Below, in pieces: positions 11,818 through 53,095 of a stretch of DNA of 64,000 nt. Made by a program: the position numbers and the translations under genes. Numbering within the stretch: position 1 is the first letter of the stretch; each line of letters begins with the position of its first letter. The notes under the pieces are model-generated. The model was not told the DNA's origin. It did no database searches and saw only the letters and a list, made by a program, of their open reading frames with translations. The stretch is from the IMG/VR virus record IMGVR_UViG_3300032562_000003, positions 186,001 to 250,000 of that record. One strand, given 5' to 3'.

Positions 11818-13299
11818 ATGAATTATGTAGGTGTCAGTTGCGGGTTTCACGACGCTGGATTGAGTGTCATTGATGATGCTGGCAATATCCTATACGCCGG
11901 CCACAGTGAACGATACAGTAAGAAGAAGCATGACGCTGATCTTTGTTTAGGCTTATTAAAAGATGCCCACAAATATATAGATGGGCATTATGAGCTTCAT
12001 TATTATGAGAAGCCTTGGTTAAAGGTAATCCGCCAGCTCAGAGCTGGACAGAAGTTAGGACCTTTCTCTGCAAAGGATGTCATCGGTAAAAACATGATGG
12101 TTCGTTTTAGCCATGACGGAGAAGTGAAAACACACAATCATCACTTATCTCATGCTGCTGCTGGTTTTCAAACTAGTCCATTTGACCATGCTACTGTAGT
12201 CATTATTGATGCTATCGGCGAGTTAGATACGATTACTATCTGGGATGCGTATTATGATGATAACGGTAGAGCCGTATATAAGAGGCTTTGGGGAAAGCAA
12301 TATCCAGATTCTATCGGTTTATTCTATTCTGCTATGACTGCGAAAGTAGGACTGAAGCCATTAGATGAAGAATATATTCTTATGGGAATGGCTGCTTACG
12401 GTAAACCTATTCATGTTAATACGATTCAAAAAGCGTTGATTCATAATAGTGGTACATTATCTTTCAAAGAAAATCTACATACCGGGGTGAGAGATGATTT
12501 CCTCAAAGATGCTGATAATATGGATATAGCTTCATCTACTCAAGAACTTACTGAAAGTTTGATACACCATGTCATAGCAAAAGCTATTAATATCGGTAAA
12601 AGTCATAATCTTGTTTTTGGTGGAGGAGTCGCACTCAACTGTGCAGCAAATCGTAATCTAGGCGGATACTTCGATAACATCTGGATCATGCCTAATCCGG
12701 GTGATGCAGGAAACTCATTGGGTGCTGCTGCATTAGGTTATGGAAAACGAGTAAATTGGGTCGATGCCTTTTTAGGATATAATATAAAAGGCAAATATCC
12801 TATTAACAATGTAATTAACCAATTGTATACTAAGAAGATGGTTGGTGTTGCTAGCGGACGAGCCGAATTCGGTCCTAGAGCATTAGGCAATCGTTCACTA
12901 TTAGCAGATCCACGCGGCCCTGATATAAAGGATACAGTAAATGAAATCAAGCGAAGACAGCAGTTCAGACCCTTTGCGCCGGTCATTCTGGAGGAACTAT
13001 GTGGCGATTATTTTAATATGCCTTGCGGTTGGAACAACAGTAGGTATATGCAAGTCATCGCTCCTTGTAGGGCTCCTGACTTATTTCCTGCTATCGTTCA
13101 CGCTGACGGGACTTCTCGTGTACAGACAGTACCGAAAGACGGTTCGGGAATCAGAAGACTCTTAGAACGTTGGTATAATGAGACACGCTGTCCAATGCTA
13201 CTTAATACATCCCTAAATATTAGAGGTGAGCCTATGGTAAATGACCGGGCAGATGCTGATCGGTTCCAGCTACTATATGGGGTAAAAGTCTGCTCTTAA
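11818..13299 (+). CDS. carbamoyltransferase (NodU/CmcH/NolO family)
   Basis: GFHDAG, HHLSHAA, DAIGE, EYILMG, GGVALN, RAEFGPRALGNRS, HADGTSRVQTV, LNTSLN. Confidence 0.92.
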   Translation: MNYVGVSCGFHDAGLSVIDDAGNILYAGHSERYSKKKHDADLCLGLLKDAHKYIDGHYELHYYEKPWLKVIRQLRAGQKLGPFSAKDVIGKNMMVRFSHDGEVKTHNHHLSHAAAGFQTSPFDHATVVIIDAIGELDTITIWDAYYDDNGRAVYKRLWGKQYPDSIGLFYSAMTAKVGLKPLDEEYILMGMAAYGKPIHVNTIQKALIHNSGTLSFKENLHTGVRDDFLKDADNMDIASSTQELTESLIHHVIAKAINIGKSHNLVFGGGVALNCAANRNLGGYFDNIWIMPNPGDAGNSLGAAALGYGKRVNWVDAFLGYNIKGKYPINNVINQLYTKKMVGVASGRAEFGPRALGNRSLLADPRGPDIKDTVNEIKRRQQFRPFAPVILEELCGDYFNMPCGWNNSRYMQVIAPCRAPDLFPAIVHADGTSRVQTVPKDGSGIRRLLERWYNETRCPMLLNTSLNIRGEPMVNDRADADRFQLLYGVKVCS

Positions 13300-14062: not shown

Positions 14063-16603
14063 ATGGCAATTAGAGAAGTATTCTACTCCGGTTCCAAACC
14101 CAATGTCCATCCAAGAGAAAAATTTGCTGAATCACTAGAAGATGCTAGGAATCAGTGTACGACTGAGCATTTTTGGATTATCAACGAGTTTTGTGACTAC
14201 CGTAAATTTGATTGGGACTTTGATTTCGAGCTATTACCTGACGAAGATATTTGGGCAGAGGCACACGACAATGTATGGCCTAGCCAACATCAAAAAGATA
14301 GTGGTACATGGCTGTGTCCTAAGGTAGCCGGTGATTATACTATCTATCGAACCGATGTTCCCCCAATTCAACGCAAGAATGAAATCAATGATTTTTGGAT
14401 TATAGATCCGGCCCTGGATAAATCTAGGTTTGACTTTTCTTGGCACCCAGATCCTACGTCTCCTCCATACATATATCAATTCGGTACTCTGCTCGATGAA
14501 AACGACGGACCCAGATACGTCACTCCCTATAATGACGGAACCATAGTACATCTAGAACGCAAGGAGGTCATACTAGAAGACCTAGAGTTTTCGAAGTACT
14601 ACATCACTACTACATTGGAAGATTTAATCAACGACCACACTAATGAAATCTTTTGGGCATTGAATCCTGAAATTGATTATTCTGGGTTTGACTTTAAATG
14701 GGTCCCTGACAGTAAGAACGTATATCACATAAATGCATTTGGTACGAAAGACAATATAAACTCCCAGACTTACTTTGTTAATGGTAAGATGTGGGCACGT
14801 GGTTATCGGGACATTAACTACATTGAGGATAAGGTACTAGATGTACGAACCAAGATCGATATTTTCTTTGTCGATAAAGGAAATCCTCAGGCACAAGAAC
14901 GCTTTCAGCAATTATCTGAGCGTATGGGCAACGTAACTAAAACTAGATATCTGAACAGCTGGGTTGACACGATCAATCGTTGTGTGACTAAATCAACTAC
15001 CAATCTATGTTGGATTCTCAATAGTGAATTAGACTATTCGTCATTTGAGTTTGATTTCTATCCTAGCCCATGGCAGATGAACTTAGTTCATGTGTTTGGA
15101 ACTCAGTGGTCACACTGGGGAACAACCTTTATGGTTAACAAAAATACATTTGCTGATGATACCAAATATATAAAAGTCATTGAGCATTTGCCTAATATAA
15201 ATTTTGTAAAACGATCACCTGCTAAGGCAGTTGATTGTCTTTATGCTATAGTAATCATCGACCATGGTAACGGTGTTGATACAGTAAAAGATGATCTACT
15301 CAGTAAAAATCTGAGCGAAAGAAACATCATTGCTGTGAAATATGATACCAATTATCTAAAAACATTCAAGGAGGTACTCAGTAAATTAGATGTCAATCGT
15401 GAACATTATGTATGGATTTGTAGTAGCGTGTGTGATTATAGCAGATTTGATTTTAGCTATATCTGCGATCCGTACACCAAAGAACAACTCCACGTCTTCC
15501 CGAGCGGTAATCAAAAATTAGGAGACACGTTTCTAGTAAACGTCAACAAGCTGCGCAAATTGATAGCAGATATGCATCGTCTAGAAGACTATGAAAAGAT
15601 TAATTATAATCAACATCAAGTTGTCTCAAGATTGATGACACCCACAACTATCGAAGGTGCATATTTTCCAAATGAAACACATATGGATTATGCTAGAAAT
15701 TATGAATGGGATTTTCCTTATGTAACTCTAGTAACTGAAGAAAACTGGGATATGGATCCTGAAATTGATCCCGAACCTATGTGTCTTTGGTCACCCGAAC
15801 AGAAAGCAATCATTATTTCTAGTACAGGTGCAACTAGAGTTACGATTCCTCGCGAGGCTAAAAACTATGTCAAAAGTGAACTGTATGATTACCCGTATAT
15901 AAAGCGAGCAAAAAAACTAACCAAATCTAAACCGATGGACATAGTGTATCTCAGTAACGGTGAAGCCGGGGCCGAAAAAAACTGGGAGCATCTACTTCAA
16001 ATTACTAAAAACATACCAAATAGGGTAGTCAGAGTGGATGGAGTTAATGGTCGAGTTGCTGCATATCATGCTGCTGCCGAAGCCAGCGAGACACCATGGT
16101 TATTTACGGTATTCGCTAAGTTACACATCAATTCTAATTTTGATTGGTCATGGCAACCAGATCGAATGCAAGCACCTAAGCATTATATCTTTCATGCGAA
16201 GAATCCGGTCAATGGATTGATCTACGGTCACCAAGCGATGATCGCGTATAATAAGCAATTAGTGCTAGAGAATGACGGTTATGGACTAGACTTTACGTTG
16301 GATGACCTGCACGAAGTTGTTCCACTCATGTCCGGTACTGCAAACTATAACACTGATCCGTTCTCTACTTGGCGTACCGCATTCCGTGAAGTGGTCAAAT
16401 TGAAGGCCGAAGATACCGACATTGCCCGAGAGCGATTAGAAGCTTGGCTTACTAAAGCTGAAGGTGATTTTGCAGAATATAGCATCAAGGGTGCAAAAGA
16501 CGCAGAAGCCTATTACGATGAAGTTGATGGCGATTTTGATGCACTGCGATTGAGCTACGAGTGGGAATGGTTAAAATCACGCTTCGTGCAAAAATACGGT
16601 TGA
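14063..16603 (+). CDS. large multi-module glycosyltransferase-like protein
   Basis: about five repeated W..(D)Y..FDF.W.P modules; last module resembles 209..1150. Confidence 0.55.
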   Translation: MAIREVFYSGSKPNVHPREKFAESLEDARNQCTTEHFWIINEFCDYRKFDWDFDFELLPDEDIWAEAHDNVWPSQHQKDSGTWLCPKVAGDYTIYRTDVPPIQRKNEINDFWIIDPALDKSRFDFSWHPDPTSPPYIYQFGTLLDENDGPRYVTPYNDGTIVHLERKEVILEDLEFSKYYITTTLEDLINDHTNEIFWALNPEIDYSGFDFKWVPDSKNVYHINAFGTKDNINSQTYFVNGKMWARGYRDINYIEDKVLDVRTKIDIFFVDKGNPQAQERFQQLSERMGNVTKTRYLNSWVDTINRCVTKSTTNLCWILNSELDYSSFEFDFYPSPWQMNLVHVFGTQWSHWGTTFMVNKNTFADDTKYIKVIEHLPNINFVKRSPAKAVDCLYAIVIIDHGNGVDTVKDDLLSKNLSERNIIAVKYDTNYLKTFKEVLSKLDVNREHYVWICSSVCDYSRFDFSYICDPYTKEQLHVFPSGNQKLGDTFLVNVNKLRKLIADMHRLEDYEKINYNQHQVVSRLMTPTTIEGAYFPNETHMDYARNYEWDFPYVTLVTEENWDMDPEIDPEPMCLWSPEQKAIIISSTGATRVTIPREAKNYVKSELYDYPYIKRAKKLTKSKPMDIVYLSNGEAGAEKNWEHLLQITKNIPNRVVRVDGVNGRVAAYHAAAEASETPWLFTVFAKLHINSNFDWSWQPDRMQAPKHYIFHAKNPVNGLIYGHQAMIAYNKQLVLENDGYGLDFTLDDLHEVVPLMSGTANYNTDPFSTWRTAFREVVKLKAEDTDIARERLEAWLTKAEGDFAEYSIKGAKDAEAYYDEVDGDFDALRLSYEWEWLKSRFVQKYG

Positions 16604-16629
16604 CATGCAATGTCATATATGATTAAATA
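16600..16629 (+). promoter_or_regulatory. sigma70-type promoter overlapped by TAAATA late motif, driving tmRNA
   Basis: TTGACA(16600)-17 nt-TTAAAT(16623); TAAATA 16624-29. Confidence 0.6.
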
Positions 16630-16635
16630 GTATTT

Positions 16636-16965
16636 GTTCGTTGATACGGACTTAAAACCGGGGAAGACAGGGGTGCGATTCCCCTCGCCTCCACCAGTAA
16701 ACACACGATAACAGGACGCTGGCTCTGTGAAGCGGGATATCGGGGTAGCTGCCGAGAAGACGGGGAGAGCATCGTGTGTTTTCTTATGGGGGCGTATAGT
16801 ATCGATTCACGGCTAGTAGGAAAGTGGAGAACACGGTAAGAAACGACCGTCAATCAGTTCAAATTACTAAATGCAAACGAAAATGATGCATATGAAGGCC
16901 TTGCGTTAGCCGCATAAGTCTTTTGGGCTTTGCTAGTTGAGCCTCGAAACAGAATCAACTAGCAC
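16636..16965 (+). ncRNA. ssrA: circularly permuted (two-piece) tmRNA
   Basis: T-arm AGGGG-TGCGATT-CCCCT + CGCCTCC-ACCA (ends 16696) precedes GGGGGCG (16788), giving acceptor stem with G3.U70; tag ORF 16873-16917 ANENDAYEGLALAA*; terminal hairpin 16931-16964; outer ends approximate. Confidence 0.92.
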
Positions 16966-21685: not shown

Positions 21686-22975
21686 ATGAGCGCCGTAATT
21701 ACCCCTACTAAAAAGAGCAAGCGTACTCGCAGCAAGAAGTACGAAAATCTTATCGGTCCTATGGATCCTAAGATTGATGCTCAAGCCCGCGAACGTCTTG
21801 TTACGGCACGCATCGGTCTCCTTCTGCGTCATGCGTTTTTCGGCAACCTTGCTACTCGTCTTGCTCTTACTAATGCGGACGAATGGTGTCCGACTGCTGC
21901 GACCGACGGTCTGAGATTTTACTATAACTCTCGCTTCATCATGATGCTCAAGACGAAGGAAGTTGAATTCCTCGTTGGTCACGAAGTTCTGCACGTGGTC
22001 TACGATCACATGGGTCGTCGTGACAATCGTGATCCGGAAATCTGGAACATCGCTGATGACTATGCAGTCAACGCAGACTTGAAGCGTCACCGCGTGGGCG
22101 AATTTATTACTACTGTGCCTTGCTTGTATGAGTCTAAGTACGAAAACTGGGCCGCAGAAGCCATCTACGATGACCTCATGAAGAATGTCAAGTACATCAA
22201 TATTGAGGATCTCCTCGACAAGATGTTGGACGATCACGTTGACGGTGACGACGACGGCGACGGCCGCGCAGGCGGCGACAAACCTGGCAAGGGCCGCCCC
22301 AAGCTTTCTCAGGAAGAAAAGGACCGCATTCGTCAAGAGGTCCGTCAAGCGGTAATCAACGCTGCTTCTACGGCTGAGGCTGGCACTGTTCCGAAGGGCG
22401 TTGAACGCATGATCAAGCAACTGACTAGCCCGATCATGCCCTGGCGCGAATTGATCCAAACTAATCTGACCTCTGCTATCAAGTCTGATTATACTTGGAT
22501 GCGTCCTTCTCGTCGCAGCTGGCACATGGACGCTGTCATGCCCGGCATGAATCCTGGCGAAGAAATTGACGTTGACATTTATATCGACATGTCAGGTTCT
22601 ATCTCGCAGAAGCAAGGTATGCAGTTTCTTTCGGAAGTTGCCGGCATGATGGATGCGTTCGATGGCTACAGCCTTCGGGTCTCGACATTCGACACTAAGG
22701 TCTATAACACTCAAGAATTTTCTTCTGAAAACATGGAAAACATTGAGGAGTATCAACTGTTCGGTGGCGGTGGCACTGACTTTGACTGCGTATTCGATGA
22801 CCTTAAGGAAGCAGGACGAGTTCCGGCTCGTCTGATCGTCTTCACGGACGGGTATCCTTGCGGCAGCTGGGGCGATCAAAATTACTGTGATACGACTTGG
22901 ATCATTCACGGTGACCCCGATCCTCACCCGCCCTTCGGTCAATGGGCCATTTATGATGACCATCGCAAGTCCTAA
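21686..22975 (+). CDS. metallopeptidase-like (HExxH) + VWA domain protein (DUF2201-like), MoxR partner
   Basis: TAATDG, HEVLH, MIDAS-like DMSGS, GGGGTDF, VFTDG. Confidence 0.85.
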   Translation: MSAVITPTKKSKRTRSKKYENLIGPMDPKIDAQARERLVTARIGLLLRHAFFGNLATRLALTNADEWCPTAATDGLRFYYNSRFIMMLKTKEVEFLVGHEVLHVVYDHMGRRDNRDPEIWNIADDYAVNADLKRHRVGEFITTVPCLYESKYENWAAEAIYDDLMKNVKYINIEDLLDKMLDDHVDGDDDGDGRAGGDKPGKGRPKLSQEEKDRIRQEVRQAVINAASTAEAGTVPKGVERMIKQLTSPIMPWRELIQTNLTSAIKSDYTWMRPSRRSWHMDAVMPGMNPGEEIDVDIYIDMSGSISQKQGMQFLSEVAGMMDAFDGYSLRVSTFDTKVYNTQEFSSENMENIEEYQLFGGGGTDFDCVFDDLKEAGRVPARLIVFTDGYPCGSWGDQNYCDTTWIIHGDPDPHPPFGQWAIYDDHRKS

Positions 22976-33150: not shown

Positions 33151-34698
33151 ATGAGCAATCAACCAACACTAATAAAAGATCCATATAAGAAGACGGTCTT
33201 CAAGAATAAAAAAGAACTTGAGGACTTCATGAAGTGTTGTGATCCTGAAACCGGATATCTATACTTTATGGATAACTTTTTCTACATTCAACATCCTACT
33301 AAAGGTAGTATGTTATATCACCCGTGGCCTTATCAAGAAAGATTGATAGAAACATACCACAAGTATAGATTCTCTATATCGCTAATGCCTAGACAGTCAG
33401 GTAAGTCAACATCCGCTGCTGGTTACCTACTTTGGTATGCAATGTTCGTTCCTGACTCTACGATTCTTATTGCAGCACACAAATATACTGGTGCACAAGA
33501 AATCATGCAGAGAATAAGGTATGCGTATGAAAACTGTCCAGATCACATAAAGGCAGGAGTCACTACATACAATAAGGGCTCTTTAGATTTTGAAAACGGT
33601 TCTCGTATTGTATCCGCCACTACTACTGAAAACACCGGTCGTGGTATGTCTATCACGCTGCTATATCTTGACGAATTTGCGTTCGTTAGACCTAGCATTG
33701 CTAAAGAATTTTGGACATCCATTACTCCTACGCTAGCAACTGGTGGTAAGGCAATCATCACGTCAACGCCAAACTCAGACGAAGACCAATTCGCGTTGAT
33801 TTGGAAGGGTGCAAATAAAACGGAAGATGAGTTCGGTAATACGACTGAGTTAGGTGTAAACGGATTCAGAGCATATCGAGCTTATTGGAAAGAGCAGCCA
33901 GGAAGAGATGAGAAATGGGCAAACGAGATCCGCGCCCAGTTAGGTGATGATCGTTTTGGTCGAGAAATAGATTGTAACTTCATCATTGCGGATGAAACCT
34001 TAATAAATCCAAATACACTGTTGATGTTAGATGGCATAGAACCTATAACTAGAATGGGACAAGTTCGCTGGTATAAGACACCAGAAAAGGGAAAGTTGTA
34101 TGTAGTTGCATTGGACCCCTCATTGGGTACTGGTGGAGATCCGGCTGCTATGCAAATATTTGAAGCCAGTACGACTACTCAAATAGGTGAGTGGAAGCAT
34201 AACAAAACTGATATTCCCAGTCAGATTAAGCTAATGGCACAGATCACCAAATACATAGCTGAATGCACTGGTGAGCCCAACAACATTTATTATTCTGTGG
34301 AAAATAACTCTATTGGTGAAGCGTCATTGATCTCACTGGCAGAATACGGAGAAGCCAACATTCAGGGTACGTTTATCAGTGAACCAGGTAAGAAACGTAA
34401 AGGATTCAACACTAGCCAAAAGCCCAAATTAGCAGCGTGTGCAAAATTCAAGACACTGTTAGAATCAAAAAAGATGACAATATATAGCCGATCGCTGATC
34501 AGCGAACTTAAGGCTTTTGTCGCAAACGGGGGCAGTTATGCTGCTAAGATCGGCGATACCGATGATTTAGTTATGTCATCCCTGTTAGCAGTTAGAATGA
34601 TGCAACAACTAGCGGATTTTCATGGTGATCTGGAATCTCAAATTCGTGACCATGACGAGTTTGTTGCTCCGCTTCCATTCTTTGCAATCTTTGGCTAA
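33151..34698 (+). CDS. terL: terminase large subunit (T4 gp17-like)
   Basis: PRQSGKST, LYLDEFAF, ITSTPN, ALDPSLG, DDLVM; no intein. Confidence 0.95.
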   Translation: MSNQPTLIKDPYKKTVFKNKKELEDFMKCCDPETGYLYFMDNFFYIQHPTKGSMLYHPWPYQERLIETYHKYRFSISLMPRQSGKSTSAAGYLLWYAMFVPDSTILIAAHKYTGAQEIMQRIRYAYENCPDHIKAGVTTYNKGSLDFENGSRIVSATTTENTGRGMSITLLYLDEFAFVRPSIAKEFWTSITPTLATGGKAIITSTPNSDEDQFALIWKGANKTEDEFGNTTELGVNGFRAYRAYWKEQPGRDEKWANEIRAQLGDDRFGREIDCNFIIADETLINPNTLLMLDGIEPITRMGQVRWYKTPEKGKLYVVALDPSLGTGGDPAAMQIFEASTTTQIGEWKHNKTDIPSQIKLMAQITKYIAECTGEPNNIYYSVENNSIGEASLISLAEYGEANIQGTFISEPGKKRKGFNTSQKPKLAACAKFKTLLESKKMTIYSRSLISELKAFVANGGSYAAKIGDTDDLVMSSLLAVRMMQQLADFHGDLESQIRDHDEFVAPLPFFAIFG

Positions 34699-44625: not shown

Positions 44626-45618
44626 ATGAACTATAAAGAACACCTCCTGCATTTTTTCCTTCAAGGTAAAATAAGCTTAAGTCAATACGACTATAAGTTC
44701 ATGTCGAATCTTCAACAGATGATTCACGCGAACCATAGGATTACGACTAATCAGGTTGAACTGTTCGATAAACTGGTCAGTAAATATCGTAAACAGTTGA
44801 TTAAGACCGAATTTAATGTAGATACACTGAAGTCGTTGCCATGGAAAACTTCAGTTGTACAAAGCACCGAAGAGTATACCAGCGCCAAAGTCAGTTTGGT
44901 AGGCAATGAATTAACTATTAAGCTACCCTTCAACAAAACGTTCATTTCAGAATTCAGAGATATAAAGTACAACACATTCGAATGGAACAAAGATCGAAAA
45001 GTGTACACTGCACCATTCAGCACGACTGCATTGCATGTTGCTGCTACTAAGTTACAGAAATATTTTTCTGTAGTTAGGTTTTGTGATACCTTACAAGCCA
45101 TACTAGATCAACTTAAGCAGTATGAGGCCGCCACAGTTTGGGACCCGACTTTGGTAAAAGTGGGGAATTCATATTTTATTGCAGCGTGCAATCCGATCAT
45201 AGCTGATGTACTCTCTGATGTGGAATTAAATACTGAACCTAAAACTCTGTATACGCTATCTAATGCGGGTGTTAAGGTTGATCCTGCCTTGCTTACAGAA
45301 CCAAAATTGAAGTTTGCACATGAATATTCTACGCAAGTGGACTTATGTGATCTTACGTCGCTCATATCTTGGTTACAAGAGTTAGATTGTAAAAATGTAA
45401 TTTTGGGTAGAGGAATCACATTAAATAAGCAGGTATATAATGAGTTGACACTCAAGTTAAATGAGGCAAACATCTACTATAGGTCCTTGCAAGGTGCAAC
45501 CTTAACCAAAGCAGACGTGCTAATTCAACCAACCTCAACATTAACGATAGATCGCGGCTTTAGAGATTTAGGTAAAATAGTAACCCTATCAAATTCAAAT
45601 CCAGTAGTAGTTAAATAA
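44626..45618 (+). CDS. conserved hypothetical protein upstream of UvsW
   Basis: 330-aa ORF. Confidence 0.7.
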   Translation: MNYKEHLLHFFLQGKISLSQYDYKFMSNLQQMIHANHRITTNQVELFDKLVSKYRKQLIKTEFNVDTLKSLPWKTSVVQSTEEYTSAKVSLVGNELTIKLPFNKTFISEFRDIKYNTFEWNKDRKVYTAPFSTTALHVAATKLQKYFSVVRFCDTLQAILDQLKQYEAATVWDPTLVKVGNSYFIAACNPIIADVLSDVELNTEPKTLYTLSNAGVKVDPALLTEPKLKFAHEYSTQVDLCDLTSLISWLQELDCKNVILGRGITLNKQVYNELTLKLNEANIYYRSLQGATLTKADVLIQPTSTLTIDRGFRDLGKIVTLSNSNPVVVK

Positions 45619-45671
45619 CGAAATCTCATTATCAACAGGCTATGGAGAAGGAAAGACCCAAGGAATAAACA

Positions 45672-46697
45672 TTGAAAACAGCAACAATAGAAATTAAGGA
45701 CGAAGTAAACGTTAAAATTTTAGGACTTGAGTTAGATGTAAGGCGCGCTCTCATGAAAAAATTTGAGTACGAGAAGCCCGGTGCCAGATATCAACCAGCA
45801 GTTCGATTGGGTAGATGGAATGGTAAGATCAGCTATTTTTCTTTAGCAGGGAGTACCTATCTAAATCTACTGGATGAAATCATTCCGATACTAATCGATT
45901 ACGGCTATGACATAGTACTAGACGACAAGAGAAAAAATCACTTAGACCTAAAGTTTGACCTGATAAACGAGAATACTTTTGCTAACATATGCTGGCCCGC
46001 CGGACATGAACGTGAAGGTCAACCTATAATTCTGCGTGATTATCAAGTGGAAATCGTCAATAACTTTTTAGCCAATCCACAGTCACTTCAAGAAATAGCA
46101 ACAGGCGCTGGCAAGACATTAATGACAGCCGCATTGTCTAAAAGTATTGAGCCATATGGTCGATCTATCGTAGTTGTTCCCAACAAGTCGTTGGTAGTAC
46201 AAACCGAAGCAGATTACAAAAATCTTCAACTTGAGGTAGGCGTGTACTTTGGTGATCGAAAGGATTACGGTAAAACACATACCATCTGTACATGGCAATC
46301 ACTGAACAATTTGCTCAAGGTTAAAGCTGAACAAGATCCTAACAAGGATCCTGATATGGAAGACTTTTTCTTTGATGATGTTGTTTGTGTCATGGTTGAT
46401 GAATGTTTTCACGGAGAATCAGTGGTGCTAACCCCGGTTGGATATGTACCCATCAAGGACATTAAAGCCGGAGATAAAGTAATCAATTATTGTGAACAGT
46501 CCGGAACCTTCAAGGAAGATACAGTGGTAAAACAACAGCACAATCTTACTGTGTCGTCCACTGAAAAAATGTATGAGATGGAATTTGATAACGGACGTGT
46601 AATTAGGGTTACTGGAAATCATCAATTTCTAACAAATCTAGGCTGGTGCCGGGCTGACGAACTTACTGAAAATCACGAAATAGTAAATAAAACATAA
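45672..46697 (+). CDS. uvsW: UvsW-like SF2 helicase N-extein (244 aa) fused to split-intein N-half (46404-46694, 97 aa)
   Basis: LRDYQ, ATGAGKT, VMVDE|CFHGES (block A Cys1), TGNHQF (block B); TTG start. Confidence 0.92.
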   Translation: MKTATIEIKDEVNVKILGLELDVRRALMKKFEYEKPGARYQPAVRLGRWNGKISYFSLAGSTYLNLLDEIIPILIDYGYDIVLDDKRKNHLDLKFDLINENTFANICWPAGHEREGQPIILRDYQVEIVNNFLANPQSLQEIATGAGKTLMTAALSKSIEPYGRSIVVVPNKSLVVQTEADYKNLQLEVGVYFGDRKDYGKTHTICTWQSLNNLLKVKAEQDPNKDPDMEDFFFDDVVCVMVDECFHGESVVLTPVGYVPIKDIKAGDKVINYCEQSGTFKEDTVVKQQHNLTVSSTEKMYEMEFDNGRVIRVTGNHQFLTNLGWCRADELTENHEIVNKT

Positions 46698-46703
46698 ATA
46701 CAT

Positions 46704-47645
46704 ATGGCTAAGGCAGGAGTATTCATGAAAATTACATATGAACAATGGAAAGATCGGTTAAACAAGCGACTAGCAGAACATAACCAACAGGTAAGGGTCG
46801 TTACTTTTGGAAAATCAACACTAGAATTATCAACCGGCGAGATATTAATACAGCCCGAGTTTAATAATTTTAAAAAGAGGGTAATGAATTCCAAGACTGA
46901 TCTTTGGGTGAAGAATATGGATTTGCTTCTATCCGGATTAATATCTGATCGGGAAGTCAAGGCTAAGCTTGCTGCAATTGGTGGCGAAGCCGTTCATAAA
47001 TTACATCCTGAACTTAGTAGTCGCAATTTAAATACAGGTGTGCCGTGGAATAAAGGGAAAACAGGACTACAAACTTCTTGGGCGAAGGGTTTGACTAAAC
47101 AAACCGACAGTCGGGTTGCTGCTAGAGTAAATAGCGGGGAAGCAAACGGTATGTATGGTGTAAAAATGTCTGACCAGGATAAAAAATTCCGATCGGATAT
47201 AATGAAGGATAAAATTTTATATGGAGACTTTACCCCAAATTCCAACAATAGAAACACGCACTGGGAAGCAACGTTTAACAGAAAGAAATATAGATCGAGT
47301 TGGGAAGCGTTGTTTCAGTATATGTATCAGGATGCAGCGTATGAAACATTGAGATTAGAATACATTATCAACGGTAATCGAAAAATATACATAGTTGATT
47401 TTGTTGATTATAAAACCAAACAGGTAGTAGAAGTGAAGCCGACGGAGTTATGCCGAGGTAAGATATTTGACGCAAAAATGGTTGCCCTTAAAGAGTGGGC
47501 AGATCAAAATGGGTTTAGTGTCATTGTCGCAACACGGGAATGGCTATTGAATAATAGCTGCCCTTCCGACCTCTCTGGATTTGATGAAAAAACCGCAACA
47601 AAGATAAGGAAGTTATATGAAGCTAATAAGAAAAACCGAAATTGA
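46704..47645 (+). CDS. free-standing homing endonuclease (PD-(D/E)XK/TnsA-like, NUMOD3-like repeats) between intein halves
   Basis: PWNKGK, GEANGMYG, YRSSWE, YIVDF...VEVKP; TAAATA immediately upstream. Confidence 0.75.
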   Translation: MAKAGVFMKITYEQWKDRLNKRLAEHNQQVRVVTFGKSTLELSTGEILIQPEFNNFKKRVMNSKTDLWVKNMDLLLSGLISDREVKAKLAAIGGEAVHKLHPELSSRNLNTGVPWNKGKTGLQTSWAKGLTKQTDSRVAARVNSGEANGMYGVKMSDQDKKFRSDIMKDKILYGDFTPNSNNRNTHWEATFNRKKYRSSWEALFQYMYQDAAYETLRLEYIINGNRKIYIVDFVDYKTKQVVEVKPTELCRGKIFDAKMVALKEWADQNGFSVIVATREWLLNNSCPSDLSGFDEKTATKIRKLYEANKKNRN

Positions 47646-48453
47646 TAAACCTGACGAAGTGTTCAATCTCCACATTGAAAATGATCATAATTACATAGTT
47701 GACGGTGCAGTAGTATCCAACTGTCACATGGCAAAAGCTGATGTTCTCAAGCAAATGCTTACTGGGGTATTCGCTGATGTTCCTATTCGCTGGGGATTAA
47801 CCGGTACCATACCTAAAGCCGAAATGGATCGCGCTTCGATTCTAGTATCTCTTGGGCCAGTCATCGGGAAGTTAGCAGCAAGTGAGCTACAAGATCGAGG
47901 TGTTCTTGCAAGTTGTCACGTTAACATAGTGCAGCTTAAAGATACTTCGGAGTTTACAAACTATCAAAGCGAGTTAAAGTTTCTACTAGAGGACGGCCAT
48001 CGTTTAGACAAAATCGCTGATCTTGTACGAGCCGTCAATAAAACAGGCAACACATTGGTTTTGGTTGATAGAGTAAATGCAGGTAAAGAACTAGTCAGCA
48101 GACTACAAAATTCAGTGTTTGTTAATGGTGGAACAAAACTAACAGAACGCAAAGAAGAATACGATGAGGTTGCGATCAGTGATGATAAGATAATTGTAGC
48201 TACATATGGTGTTGCGGCTGTGGGCATCAACATTCCTCGAATCTTTAATTTGGTTCTCATCGAACCAGGCAAATCATTTGTACGAGTTATACAGAGCATT
48301 GGTCGTGGCATAAGAAAAGCAGAAGACAAAGACCACGTGCAGATTTGGGACGTTACTAGTACGTGTAAGTTTGCAAAGAGGCATTTAACCCAGCGTAAGG
48401 CTTTTTATAAAGAGGCTAAATATCCCTTTACTATAGAGAAACTGGATTACTAA
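47617..48453 (+). CDS. uvsW: split-intein C-half (47617-47721, 35 aa) fused to UvsW C-extein (243 aa)
   Basis: MKLIRK...VFNLHIENDHNYIVDGAVVSN|CHMAK; helicase motifs GLTGT, VGINIP, QSIGRGIR; TAAGGA SD. Confidence 0.92.
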   Translation: MKLIRKTEIDKPDEVFNLHIENDHNYIVDGAVVSNCHMAKADVLKQMLTGVFADVPIRWGLTGTIPKAEMDRASILVSLGPVIGKLAASELQDRGVLASCHVNIVQLKDTSEFTNYQSELKFLLEDGHRLDKIADLVRAVNKTGNTLVLVDRVNAGKELVSRLQNSVFVNGGTKLTERKEEYDEVAISDDKIIVATYGVAAVGINIPRIFNLVLIEPGKSFVRVIQSIGRGIRKAEDKDHVQIWDVTSTCKFAKRHLTQRKAFYKEAKYPFTIEKLDY

Positions 48454-48457
48454 AATG

Positions 48458-48486
48458 TTGACTTTTACACACATTGTTGCTAGAAT
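48458..48486 (+). promoter_or_regulatory. sigma70-type promoter
   Basis: TTGACT-17 nt-TAGAAT. Confidence 0.6.
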
Positions 48487-48492
48487 AACACT

Positions 48493-48996
48493 ATGAGAAT
48501 TTTATCACTGGACACCAACGAGGCATATAATCTAGAACATCTACCGGAAGAAATTGATGATTTGCGATTTGCAATATTAGACAACTCTACTCCCACAAAC
48601 GTAGACTATCATTTTATTCCTCTTATTTTTCTAGAATCATTTAATTCACCGGCACTGGTTTTAAAAATTGGTGAGAGAACAATCAAGATGCCGGTCGACT
48701 GGCAAGTCTTGATAGGTGAACAAGAACACGGTGACCTAGAGACTCTACCCTTATCAAGCTTGAATGATCGTGGATTTCATGCATTTCAATTTAATCCGTT
48801 GACTTCTCATTCCCCGACATTTTTACCAATTGAAATTGTTGATATCTATACAGACGTGACATGGTATGCACCGAGATTACGTAATGGACAATTTTTAGCA
48901 GTACCAATCGATGATGGACCTAAACCAAGGTGTGTTTACTTTGTCAAGGAAATCAGCAGGAACTGTGAGACTGTAGACTATAGCCAAGCATTTTAA
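48493..48996 (+). CDS. conserved hypothetical protein
   Basis: 167-aa ORF. Confidence 0.75.
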   Translation: MRILSLDTNEAYNLEHLPEEIDDLRFAILDNSTPTNVDYHFIPLIFLESFNSPALVLKIGERTIKMPVDWQVLIGEQEHGDLETLPLSSLNDRGFHAFQFNPLTSHSPTFLPIEIVDIYTDVTWYAPRLRNGQFLAVPIDDGPKPRCVYFVKEISRNCETVDYSQAF

Positions 48997-51968: not shown

Positions 51969-52517
51969 ATGGCACATATTATGCTTGACATGGAGACGCT
52001 GGACACAGCGCCAACCACTGTCATTCTAACTATCGGACTCGTTAAGTTTGATCCGCGCGGGTCAGGCGTAATCGAGAAACTAGAACTTCGTCCAACCATT
52101 GACGAACAAACAGATACTTTTGGTCGAAGCATCAGTGACGACACCCTTCGTTGGTGGAGTACTCAGAGCGCAGAAGCGATCAACGAATCTATGGGAGACC
52201 AGGACAGAATCTCTTACAAAGAATGTATGGAAAAGCTGTACAAGTTTTGTTGGAATCAACAGGCTATCTGGTCCAACGGCGCAGGGTTCGATGTGGTGGT
52301 AGCAGAGAATGCATTCCGTGAATTAGACATGCGTATTCCCTGGCCCTTTTGGACTATTCGTGACTGTCGTACAATCTACGATCTTGCAGGTGTGTCGTTG
52401 AAAGATGACGGGCACGTCACTACTCACAAAGCAGTAGAAGATGCCGAACGCCAGGCTATCGTGGTTCAACGTGCTTACCAAAAGTTAATTAAGGCTGGCT
52501 TTACTCATATCAAATGA
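51969..52517 (+). CDS. DEDDh 3'-5' exonuclease (RNase T/Rv2179c-like)
   Basis: MLDMETL, WSNGAGFD, RDCRT, HKAVEDA. Confidence 0.88.
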   Translation: MAHIMLDMETLDTAPTTVILTIGLVKFDPRGSGVIEKLELRPTIDEQTDTFGRSISDDTLRWWSTQSAEAINESMGDQDRISYKECMEKLYKFCWNQQAIWSNGAGFDVVVAENAFRELDMRIPWPFWTIRDCRTIYDLAGVSLKDDGHVTTHKAVEDAERQAIVVQRAYQKLIKAGFTHIK

Positions 52518-53095
52518 GAATAGATTCAGACATTGACATTGATTTGGGAAATCGTGACGCAGTGTTGTCACTGATTAAGCATGTCCATGCTGCAATGCGA
52601 AAAGTCAATCCTATCAGAAAGCACCCGTCTGGTATATATCCCACAGATATTCCTTATGATCCCGTGTATGACATGGCTGCAATCGATTATGCAGAAGCAG
52701 AAGCCCGTGGCTATTTTAAGATTGATTTACTGAATGTTTACGTATATAATATGGTCAAAGATGAAGAACATCTAATTAGGTTAATGCAAGAACCGGATTG
52801 GTCAATGCTCAATGATAAAAATATCGTTGAGCAACTGATTCACTTGAATAGCCAATTTGAAGCAGTTAGACGAATGCCGGAGCCTATAAACTCTATTCCT
52901 AGGCTGGCCATGTTTCTTGCAGCAATTAGACCTGCGAAGCGACACTTGCTTAATAAGACCTGGAAAGAAATAAACGAGACTGTTTGGGAAAAGGATCAGA
53001 CTGGTTATGCTTATAAACGTAGCCACGCGATTAGTTACAGTCACTTAGTGGTGGTACACATGAATTTACTAAAAGAAAACAGTGAGAAAGTTTAA
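52514..53095 (+). CDS. minimal DNA polymerase III alpha (DnaE)-like protein
   Basis: DIDID, KHPSG, GYFKIDLL, AAIRP, YAYKRSHAISY in 193 aa. Confidence 0.75.
   Translation: MRIDSDIDIDLGNRDAVLSLIKHVHAAMRKVNPIRKHPSGIYPTDIPYDPVYDMAAIDYAEAEARGYFKIDLLNVYVYNMVKDEEHLIRLMQEPDWSMLNDKNIVEQLIHLNSQFEAVRRMPEPINSIPRLAMFLAAIRPAKRHLLNKTWKEINETVWEKDQTGYAYKRSHAISYSHLVVVHMNLLKENSEKV

Follow-up and report, generated by a model that had tools for sequence, protein, structure and literature searches.

How would a phage obtain its UvsW helicase when the gene lies in two pieces that part inside motif II, and what could have separated them? We addressed this question in a 64,000-nucleotide (nt) stretch of viral DNA (IMG/VR record IMGVR_UViG_3300032562_000003, positions 186,001 to 250,000; hereafter the window, with positions counted from its first nucleotide), in which three open reading frames (ORFs A, B and C) occupy positions 45672–48453 of the plus strand. 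An earlier sequence-only reading had claimed that UvsW is broken here at motif II by a natural split intein with an endonuclease gene between the halves. This claim is backed by protein family models, an alignment to the T4 UvsW structure, alleles in which the site is empty, and conservation; on re-reading, its coordinates, residues and two-ORF split hold in every detail. We consider it very probable that the locus is a fractured gene, namely the uvsW of an uncultivated jumbo phage, invaded at DE/xH (the slash marks the insertion point) by a mini-intein that is itself split by a free-standing homing endonuclease gene.

The broken helicase gene and its intein halves

ORF A (45672–46697) encodes 341 amino acids (aa) from a TTG start, with a ribosome-binding site (RBS; AAGGA, 45660–45664) 7 nt upstream. 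Its residues 1–244 (45672–46403) form the N-terminal extein, which comprises the UvsW N-terminal domain and the helicase region from motif I (GAGKT) to the DE of motif II, and closes with VMVDE. Residue 245 is a cysteine (Cys1, 46404–46406), and the last 97 residues make up the N-terminal intein half (IntN, 46404–46697), which includes the block B motif TGNH and ends at a TAA stop codon (46695–46697). ORF C (47617–48453) encodes 278 aa. Its residues 1–35 (MKLIRK...HNYIVDGAVVSN) are the C-terminal intein half (IntC, 47617–47721), with block F (..NLHIENDHNY..) and a terminal Ser-Asn. CHMAK then opens the C-terminal extein (243 aa and a stop codon, 47722–48453), which contributes the +1 Cys, the His of motif II, motif III and the second RecA-like domain. 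The predicted spliced product would measure 487 aa (244 + 243).

Judged from homology, the interrupted gene is UvsW, the T4-type superfamily 2 (SF2) repair helicase. In Pfam, ORF A matches ResIII above the cut-off (6.7e-14), with DEAD and UvsW_N (5e-4) below their gathering scores, and ORF C matches Helicase_C above the cut-off (1.4e-7). PHROG families annotated as DNA helicase span both ORFs from end to end, including the intein parts (16259 for ORF A, 3.8e-62; 9690 for ORF C, 1.5e-52). For both exteins, the best matches in the PDB are T4 UvsW (1RIF and 2OCA). The alignment of the C-extein to 2OCA starts at Cys234 (E = 2.6e-15), which places the insertion between E233 and C234, in the DECH motif II of T4 UvsW. 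The exteins are also colinear with uninterrupted homologues: in about 58 loci with an empty site, the matches of the N- and C-exteins lie exactly one codon apart, at the +1 position. The N-extein is 68–78% identical to the uninterrupted uvsW of about 58 viral contigs, and the C-extein is 74–89% identical to uninterrupted alleles. The neighbouring genes encode a gp32-like single-stranded DNA-binding protein (SSB), UvsX, RNA ligase and a gp41-like helicase.

The insertion itself is, by its sequence features, a naturally split class-1 intein, since IntN closes one ORF, IntC opens another, and true stop and start signals lie between them. The intein-model search suggested by the sequence-only reading placed both halves above the NCBIfam cut-offs: intein_Nterm (TIGR01445) reaches 40.5 bits over ORF A residues 245–321, where the cut-off is 24.5, and intein_Cterm (TIGR01443) reaches 21.6 bits over ORF C residues 14–36, where it is 15.6. 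The solved inteins closest to IntN are the DnaB mini-inteins (4O1R, 6FRH and 1MI8; E = 1.9e-6, for 4O1R, to 1e-4), which share its block B context (..TGNHKFLT..GW.R.DEL..); unlike the intein studied here, they are contiguous and reside in bacterial replicative DnaB helicases rather than in UvsW. The C-terminal splicing region reads ..DHNYIVDGAVVSN followed by C, that is, a terminal Asn and a +1 Cys. Among 106 N-half homologues, Cys1 is kept in 105, the block B Thr/Ser and the block B His in all 106, and the preceding DE in 105; every IntC that we read in relatives has Asn as its last residue and Cys at +1. The ratio of nonsynonymous to synonymous substitution (dN/dS) is 0.07–0.18 for IntN, 0–0.16 for IntC and 0.15–0.38 for the endonuclease gene, and these values indicate that the intein is under purifying selection to work.

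We propose that the N-piece (244 aa plus the 97 aa of IntN) and the C-piece (the 35 aa of IntC plus 243 aa) would associate through their intein halves, and that Cys1, the block B Thr and His, the terminal Asn and the +1 Cys would then perform trans-splicing to yield a 487-aa UvsW with a DECH motif II. As the sequence-only reading proposed, helicase activity may then depend on splicing. Some observations on the intein weigh against this reading. The penultimate intein residue of the window is Ser instead of the usual His; in relatives this position is Ser, Ala or His. A penultimate Ser is tolerated in DnaE split inteins, and the Npu DnaE intein also ends in Ser-Asn. The halves of DnaE-type split inteins are complementary in charge, whereas the net charges here are −4 for IntN and −3 for IntC, without overall complementarity, and vary among relatives. 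We therefore rejected electrostatic complementarity of the two halves, and the strength of their association cannot be deduced from charge. Lastly, synonymous sites are saturated in most extein comparisons, so that dN/dS values are confined to the intein and the endonuclease gene.

The replaced His also bears on a different explanation, in which the two UvsW pieces assemble non-covalently, through the intein halves or through the exteins themselves, with splicing lost or unneeded. Precedents for fractured enzymes that lack an intein include an SbcD-like locus (Dassa et al., 2009, PMC2677866) and the genes-in-pieces NrdA of Aeromonas phage Aeh1, where a homing endonuclease has broken the enzyme in two and no intein is involved. 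However, the residues that splicing needs have been conserved in over 100 diverged copies, and purifying selection acts on the intein. Moreover, occupied alleles always carry the +1 Cys where empty alleles carry Val or Ala, a pattern expected only if this Cys is the splicing nucleophile. An unspliced intein of 132 aa within the Walker B (DExH) motif would also probably disturb the ATPase site. We thus regard a purely non-covalent complex as unlikely, and trans-splicing as the preferred reading.

The gene between the halves

ORF B lies on the same strand between the two halves and would encode 313 aa if read from its first ATG (46704–47645, with the TGA at 47643–47645). Its start is more probably the ATG at 46725, which is preceded by GGAG (46716–46719), because this start matches the nearly invariant Met8 of the family and a database gene call of 306 aa. 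The RBS (AGGAAG, 47607–47612) and the ATG (47617–47619) of ORF C both sit inside the 3' end of ORF B, and the two ORFs overlap by 29 nt. We found no terminator-like site in 45400–48700, and since each of the three ORFs has its own RBS with no such site between them, they would probably be co-transcribed. A scan for sigma-70-like promoters performed no better at this locus than in shuffled sequence. A T4-type late promoter at the IntN stop and endonuclease start (..CATAAATA..) was considered and rejected: TATAAATA occurs twice in the window against six expected occurrences, so this phage shows no sign of using the motif. We likewise rejected a self-splicing intron around the endonuclease gene, as 46300–47900 gave no group I, group II or other significant Rfam match; no intron match reached the gathering threshold anywhere near the uvsW locus.

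ORFs A and B share a reading frame and are parted by a single TAA and 6 nt, that is, by one stop and two codons (46695–46706), and in-frame fusions of IntN and the endonuclease occur in relatives (for instance P0237). Both facts would suit a sequencing or assembly artefact, with the true gene being one continuous intein with an internal endonuclease domain. IntC, on the other hand, lies in a different frame and overlaps the endonuclease gene. Three IMG/VR contigs from different samples (L004, L005 and L009; 102–259 kb) are 100% identical over all five parts of the locus, and the C-half is also found on a 305-kb contig, which together make an assembly error very unlikely and point to a jumbo phage as the source. 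Identical break points appear in cultured phage genomes that were sequenced independently. We accordingly give an artefact almost no weight, and take the stop and start signals between the intein halves as genuine.

What kind of protein does ORF B encode? Its matches in PHROG are families 22417 (6.9e-38) and 15427, the latter annotated as endonuclease (5.9e-24), and it has 406 homologues. In 32 of these, four residues are invariant (E201, D232, E243 and K245 in the 313-aa numbering), and they make up the canonical PD-(D/E)xK signature. Pfam recognizes TnsA-like_N (PF08722; best 5e-7) in 18 of the 32 and NUMOD3 in 16. The AlphaFold2 model of ORF B (mean pLDDT 81.7) consists of two confident domains with a disordered linker between them, and the secondary structure predicted for the C-terminal part is consistent with an alpha-beta-beta-beta-alpha-beta core. 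Foldseek against the PDB listed mostly PD-(D/E)xK nucleases, with TnsA as the best match (probability 0.97 but E = 0.05) and RecE, Cas4 and I-Bth0305I also listed. Further points on the opposite side are that the window's own protein lacks a Pfam match, that sequence and profile searches of the PDB gave no match for it, and that every Foldseek E-value exceeds 0.01. The nuclease assignment consequently rests on the homologues and the invariant residues.

On this basis, ORF B is probably, in terms of its domains, a nuclease of the TnsA-like PD-(D/E)xK type (C-terminal part) with NUMOD3-like DNA-binding modules, and a putative homing endonuclease of a type unlike the GIY-YIG and Vsr-like enzymes of fractured genes. 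The Vsr-like family described by Dassa et al. has an active site (I-Bth0305I-type) with conserved Asp, His and Asp plus an extra Glu and no canonical Lys (Dassa et al., 2009, PMC2677866). We rejected this family for ORF B, given its invariant E201, D232, E243 and K245 and the lack of a conserved His-Asp in the nuclease domain; its resemblance to 3R3P is at the level of the fold only (probability 0.66, E = 0.3). With TnsA of Tn7, I-Ssp6803I and I-Bth0305I, ORF B would have in common the restriction-endonuclease-like fold and the E...D...ExK signature, and some Vsr-like homing endonucleases also carry NUMOD3 motifs N-terminal to the nuclease domain. It has neither the TnsA C-terminal domain nor a transposon context, shows no sequence-level match to solved structures, and lacks the Vsr-like active site built around a His (D, H, D) that Dassa et al. 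described.

A nuclease domain of this family is also found between the halves of the terminase large-subunit gene in several T4-like phages, such as Yersinia phage phiR1-RT (g166/g167/g168; L085 1396–4245), with 36–40% identity over about 120 aa. There, too, the break separates the halves of an ATPase and follows Walker B (..IDE/C). The N-piece closes with ..IYIDE/CVSKDT.. and by eye looks as if it continues into an atypically short IntN after Walker B. The phiR1-RT locus differs from that of the window in its host gene and, again by eye, in an apparently very short IntN combined with a long IntC. Shewanella phage Thanatos-2 (L084 467–3567) is possibly the same case, with the domain annotated within the first of two terminase ORFs.

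Distribution, states and movement of the cassette

To place the locus among its relatives, we compared it with cultured and metagenomic phages. Megablast of 45500–48600 against 50,697 phage records gave no match, and relatives were seen at the protein level only. When we searched with the intein-bearing end of ORF A, 106 clusters (90% identity level) came back; nearly all measure 325–346 aa and have helicase and Hint domains, and several of them lie on contigs of 180–440 kb. The N-halves with this intein part are about 338–345 aa long, and in the representatives that we read the ORF stops directly behind it. Ten records of cultured phages match ORF A through the intein part, among them Salmonella phages S16 (HQ331142; genes gp114/gp114.1/gp115), STP4-a, SEA1, CF-SP2, AKM_NP4 and UTK0003, and Proteus phage PM2. 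They have the same three-gene layout, labelled helicase / hypothetical protein / helicase with no mention of an intein, and the alignments show a shared DE/CH junction and homologous IntN, IntC and middle ORF. The S16, STP4-a, SEA1, CF-SP2 and PM2 loci are 55–59% identical to the window in IntN, 46–49% in IntC and 32–33% in the middle ORF. They differ in that their hosts are T4-like Straboviridae with a native DECH motif, in that their exteins are 26–29% identical to those of the window, and in that their IntC ends in His-Asn rather than Ser-Asn.

The novelty that the sequence-only reading had suggested for a UvsW split intein survives in part. We found no description of a split intein in UvsW or in the S16 helicase in the full-text literature, where papers that name both subjects treat them in passages without connection to each other; this negative leaves aside papers behind subscription, for example the original description of the S16 genome. 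The fractured genes of Dassa et al. comprise gp41, IMPDH, DnaE, NrdA, NrdJ, ligase and terminase, and UvsW is not among their eight enzyme types (Dassa et al., 2009, PMC2677866). Yet the same arrangement exists in S16, STP4-a, SEA1, PM2 and metagenomes, and its novelty is limited to the lack of a description in the literature searched. The fractured uvsW thus appears undescribed, being present in public genomes although unrecognized as an intein, and common in metagenomes.

We then determined the state of 80 related viral loci by five-part tblastn and read the junctions. A split intein with an endonuclease gene is present in 16 of them, and a continuous uvsW with an empty site in about 58. In several others, the endonuclease gene is deleted while the halves are still separate ORFs, parted by two in-frame stops (L006) or by a frame change (L017/L018), or likewise apart in L012; L028 retains an endonuclease remnant of about 75 codons. 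In L006, L017 and L028, the last 12 to 75 codons or so of the endonuclease gene are retained, because this 3' piece carries the translation signals of IntC. A search with IntN alone of 1.84 billion representatives gave 1459 matches, and among those that we read were a contiguous mini-intein at the same site in full-length UvsW, of both the jumbo-phage type (P0261) and the T4-like type (P0235), and, in P0237, a fusion of N-extein, IntN and endonuclease without a stop codon. As far as these sequences go, the extant series is what the gene-breaking model of Dassa et al. leads one to expect: empty site, contiguous mini-intein, IntN–endonuclease fusion, fractured gene, and split intein without an endonuclease.

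A second intein site in UvsW, at Walker A (GK/T), was also observed, occupied by a small contiguous mini-intein in P0013 and P0019 and by a large intein in P0227 and P0234. The window's own Walker A (about 46104–46118) is intact. P0006 and P0036 begin inside the Walker A intein, which suggests that two split inteins perhaps divide uvsW into three parts in some phages.

Deleted or truncated endonuclease genes, as in L006, L012, L017 and L028, raise the question of whether the whole locus is a decaying pseudogene, with the invasion having killed uvsW in a phage that manages without it or with another helicase. Homing endonuclease genes do decay. Against this, both extein ORFs of the window are intact, with ResIII, Helicase_C and the residues of motifs I and II kept, and the exteins are 75–89% identical in protein to relatives despite saturated synonymous sites. 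The architecture persists in the 106 clusters and in viable cultured phages, and where the endonuclease has been lost the intein halves remain intact, with a dN/dS of 0.05–0.14. A pseudogene is therefore very improbable, and we retain the reading of a working fractured gene.

Evidence for movement of the cassette came from the comparison of occupied and empty alleles. In the junctions that we read, empty alleles are DEVH or DEAH and every occupied allele is DE/CH, indicating that the +1 Cys nucleophile comes with the intein in the window's lineage; DECH is itself the native motif of T4-like phages. The earlier claim that trans-splicing rebuilds DECH thus stands for the predicted product, which reads DECH, but not for the ancestral residue, as the closest intein-free alleles are DEVH or DEAH. 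When we compared the window with its relative L007, synonymous divergence was saturated in the exteins (pS 0.81–0.89) and 0.29–0.39 in IntN, the endonuclease gene and IntC. IntC is 100% identical between the two, whereas the exteins are 75–85% identical, and nucleotide identity rises from 0.65–0.70 to 0.80–0.96 over 46407–47756 and falls again thereafter. In a tree built from the exteins of 68 loci, the well-supported branches require six or more gains or losses of the intein, and the window's allele is sister to an empty one (L024; SH-aLRT 97). Towards the S16-type phages, the intein parts are 46–59% identical and the exteins 26–29%. Within the Salmonella phages, the exteins of S16 (occupied) are nearly identical to those of STML-198 and Melville (empty), whose UvsW corresponds to the S16 halves joined. 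Together with the identical contigs, the conserved catalytic residues and the dN/dS values, these divergence and tree patterns show the cassette to be a real, selected and mobile element with lateral transfer at the level of the cassette.

We propose that the nuclease would cut intein-free uvsW (DEVH or DEAH) during co-infection and that repair would then insert the cassette and, with it, the change from Val or Ala to Cys. After fixation of the cassette, its endonuclease gene would be free to decay and the split intein would remain, as only an exact deletion would restore motif II. The persistence of split forms under selection after endonuclease loss could also be taken to mean that trans-splicing has been co-opted as a regulator, in which second-order assembly or the redox state of Cys1 and the +1 Cys gates UvsW during infection and the element is no longer purely selfish. 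Such persistence fits a benefit to the phage and a difficulty of precise excision alike, however, and is sufficiently accounted for by the fact that, within an essential motif, the deletion would have to be exact (an argument reviewed in PMC2988022). In addition, the patchy distribution and the many close intein-free relatives indicate that the intein is dispensable. We hold co-option to be improbable, and favour a selfish cassette that is difficult to excise.

Further homing endonucleases were observed at the uvsW locus of cultured phages. S16 has one just upstream of the N-half (L002 2779–3414), and PM2 has one between the C-half and uvsW.1 (L003 6146–6856). In T4, segE adjoins uvsW and cuts it (PMC2988022).

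Relation to known fractured genes and genomic setting

How does this locus relate to the known fractured genes? The enzymes that the sequence-only reading had named as fractured agree with those reported (Dassa et al., 2009, PMC2677866). Like those fractured genes (gp41-1 to gp41-8, NrdJ-1, NrdA-2, IMPDH-1, DnaE, ligase and terminase), the window has a phage enzyme of DNA metabolism halved by a canonical-type split intein, along with a free-standing gene for an endonuclease between the halves on the same strand and with the expression signals of the downstream half in the 3' end of the endonuclease gene. It differs in its host protein, the SF2 helicase UvsW, in its insertion inside motif II (DE/xH) and in its endonuclease, which is probably NUMOD3 plus TnsA-like with a conserved ExK rather than GIY-YIG or Vsr-like. 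The relationship of the intein sequence to gp41-1 (E = 0.34) and to NrdJ-1 (E = 0.0037) is distant. With the cyanobacterial DnaE split inteins (Ssp and Npu), it shares the canonical break between block B and block F, halves roughly 100 and 35 residues long, Cys1 and the +1 Cys. The DnaE halves, in contrast, lie at distant loci without an endonuclease gene, their similarity to the window is weak (E = 0.13–0.2), and the window's halves lack a clear acidic/basic complementarity. What appears to be new is the protein that is interrupted, the site of insertion and the kind of endonuclease; the fractured-gene mechanism was already known.

We lean, with some reservation, towards a broader reading in which this is a previously undescribed split-intein family (the UvsW motif-II intein) with a previously unrecognized type of intein-associated endonuclease, for which all stages of gene fracturing are extant and near-isogenic occupied and empty Salmonella phages exist. 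If so, the origin of split inteins and their homing would become directly testable, and nature would provide dozens of variants of a Cys1/Cys+1 split intein that is possibly orthogonal. Fractured genes are the proposed link from ordinary to naturally split inteins, and they had previously been described largely on the basis of short pieces of metagenomic sequence. In the present case, the element occurs on long contigs of jumbo phages as well as in cultured phages of Salmonella and Proteus, in empty, contiguous, fused, fractured and endonuclease-deleted states. The comparison of S16 with STML-198 or Melville, on a laboratory strain of Salmonella, offers a system for homing, for co-conversion of the +1 residue and for the persistence of the split form after endonuclease loss. 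The element also supplies a pool of over 100 diverged pairs of canonical split inteins, which may be orthogonal to those of DnaE, gp41-1 and NrdJ-1, and ORF B would add a new nuclease architecture to the homing endonuclease repertoire. The annotation "helicase / hypothetical / helicase" in many phage genomes is also to be corrected to one gene and a mobile element.

The window as a whole carries a T4-like replication and recombination module with a large terminase, a gp32-like SSB, UvsX, RNA ligase, exonuclease and polymerase pieces, a gp41-like helicase and an HNH endonuclease. The closest cultured relatives of its UvsW are in jumbo phages (Sinorhizobium phage Phosso, Agrobacterium phage Atu_ph07, Pseudomonas phage PA5oct and Rak2-like phages), and in the top cultured matches both halves align to one and the same helicase gene, in adjoining stretches without a break. 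At 16596–16963 (plus strand), the window encodes a permuted two-piece transfer-messenger RNA (tmRNA) of the alphaproteobacterial type (Rfam tmRNA_permuted 113.8 bits, alpha_tmRNA 78.2 bits), for which ARAGORN gives the tag peptide ANENDAYEGLALAA. This type of tmRNA hints at an alphaproteobacterial host, in line with the Sinorhizobium and Agrobacterium jumbo-phage relatives.

At 51969–53095 of the window (plus strand), two adjacent short ORFs match only parts of longer phage proteins: one of 182 aa corresponds to positions 180–365 of a 436-position exonuclease profile, and another of 193 aa matches a DNA polymerase family. Together with small ORFs upstream, they may represent another gene in pieces. 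The large terminase (33151–34698, plus strand; 515 aa) matches only positions 435–865 of an 890-position PHROG terminase profile, and this profile probably includes an insertion, perhaps an intein, that is absent from the window's copy. A free-standing HNH endonuclease gene (21686–22975, plus strand; PHROG 1314, 3.4e-106) is a second selfish nuclease of the window. Two auxiliary genes on the plus strand encode a Nol-like carbamoyltransferase (11818–13299; 2.7e-91) and a protein with a weak match to a radical-SAM-domain protein (1154–2551).

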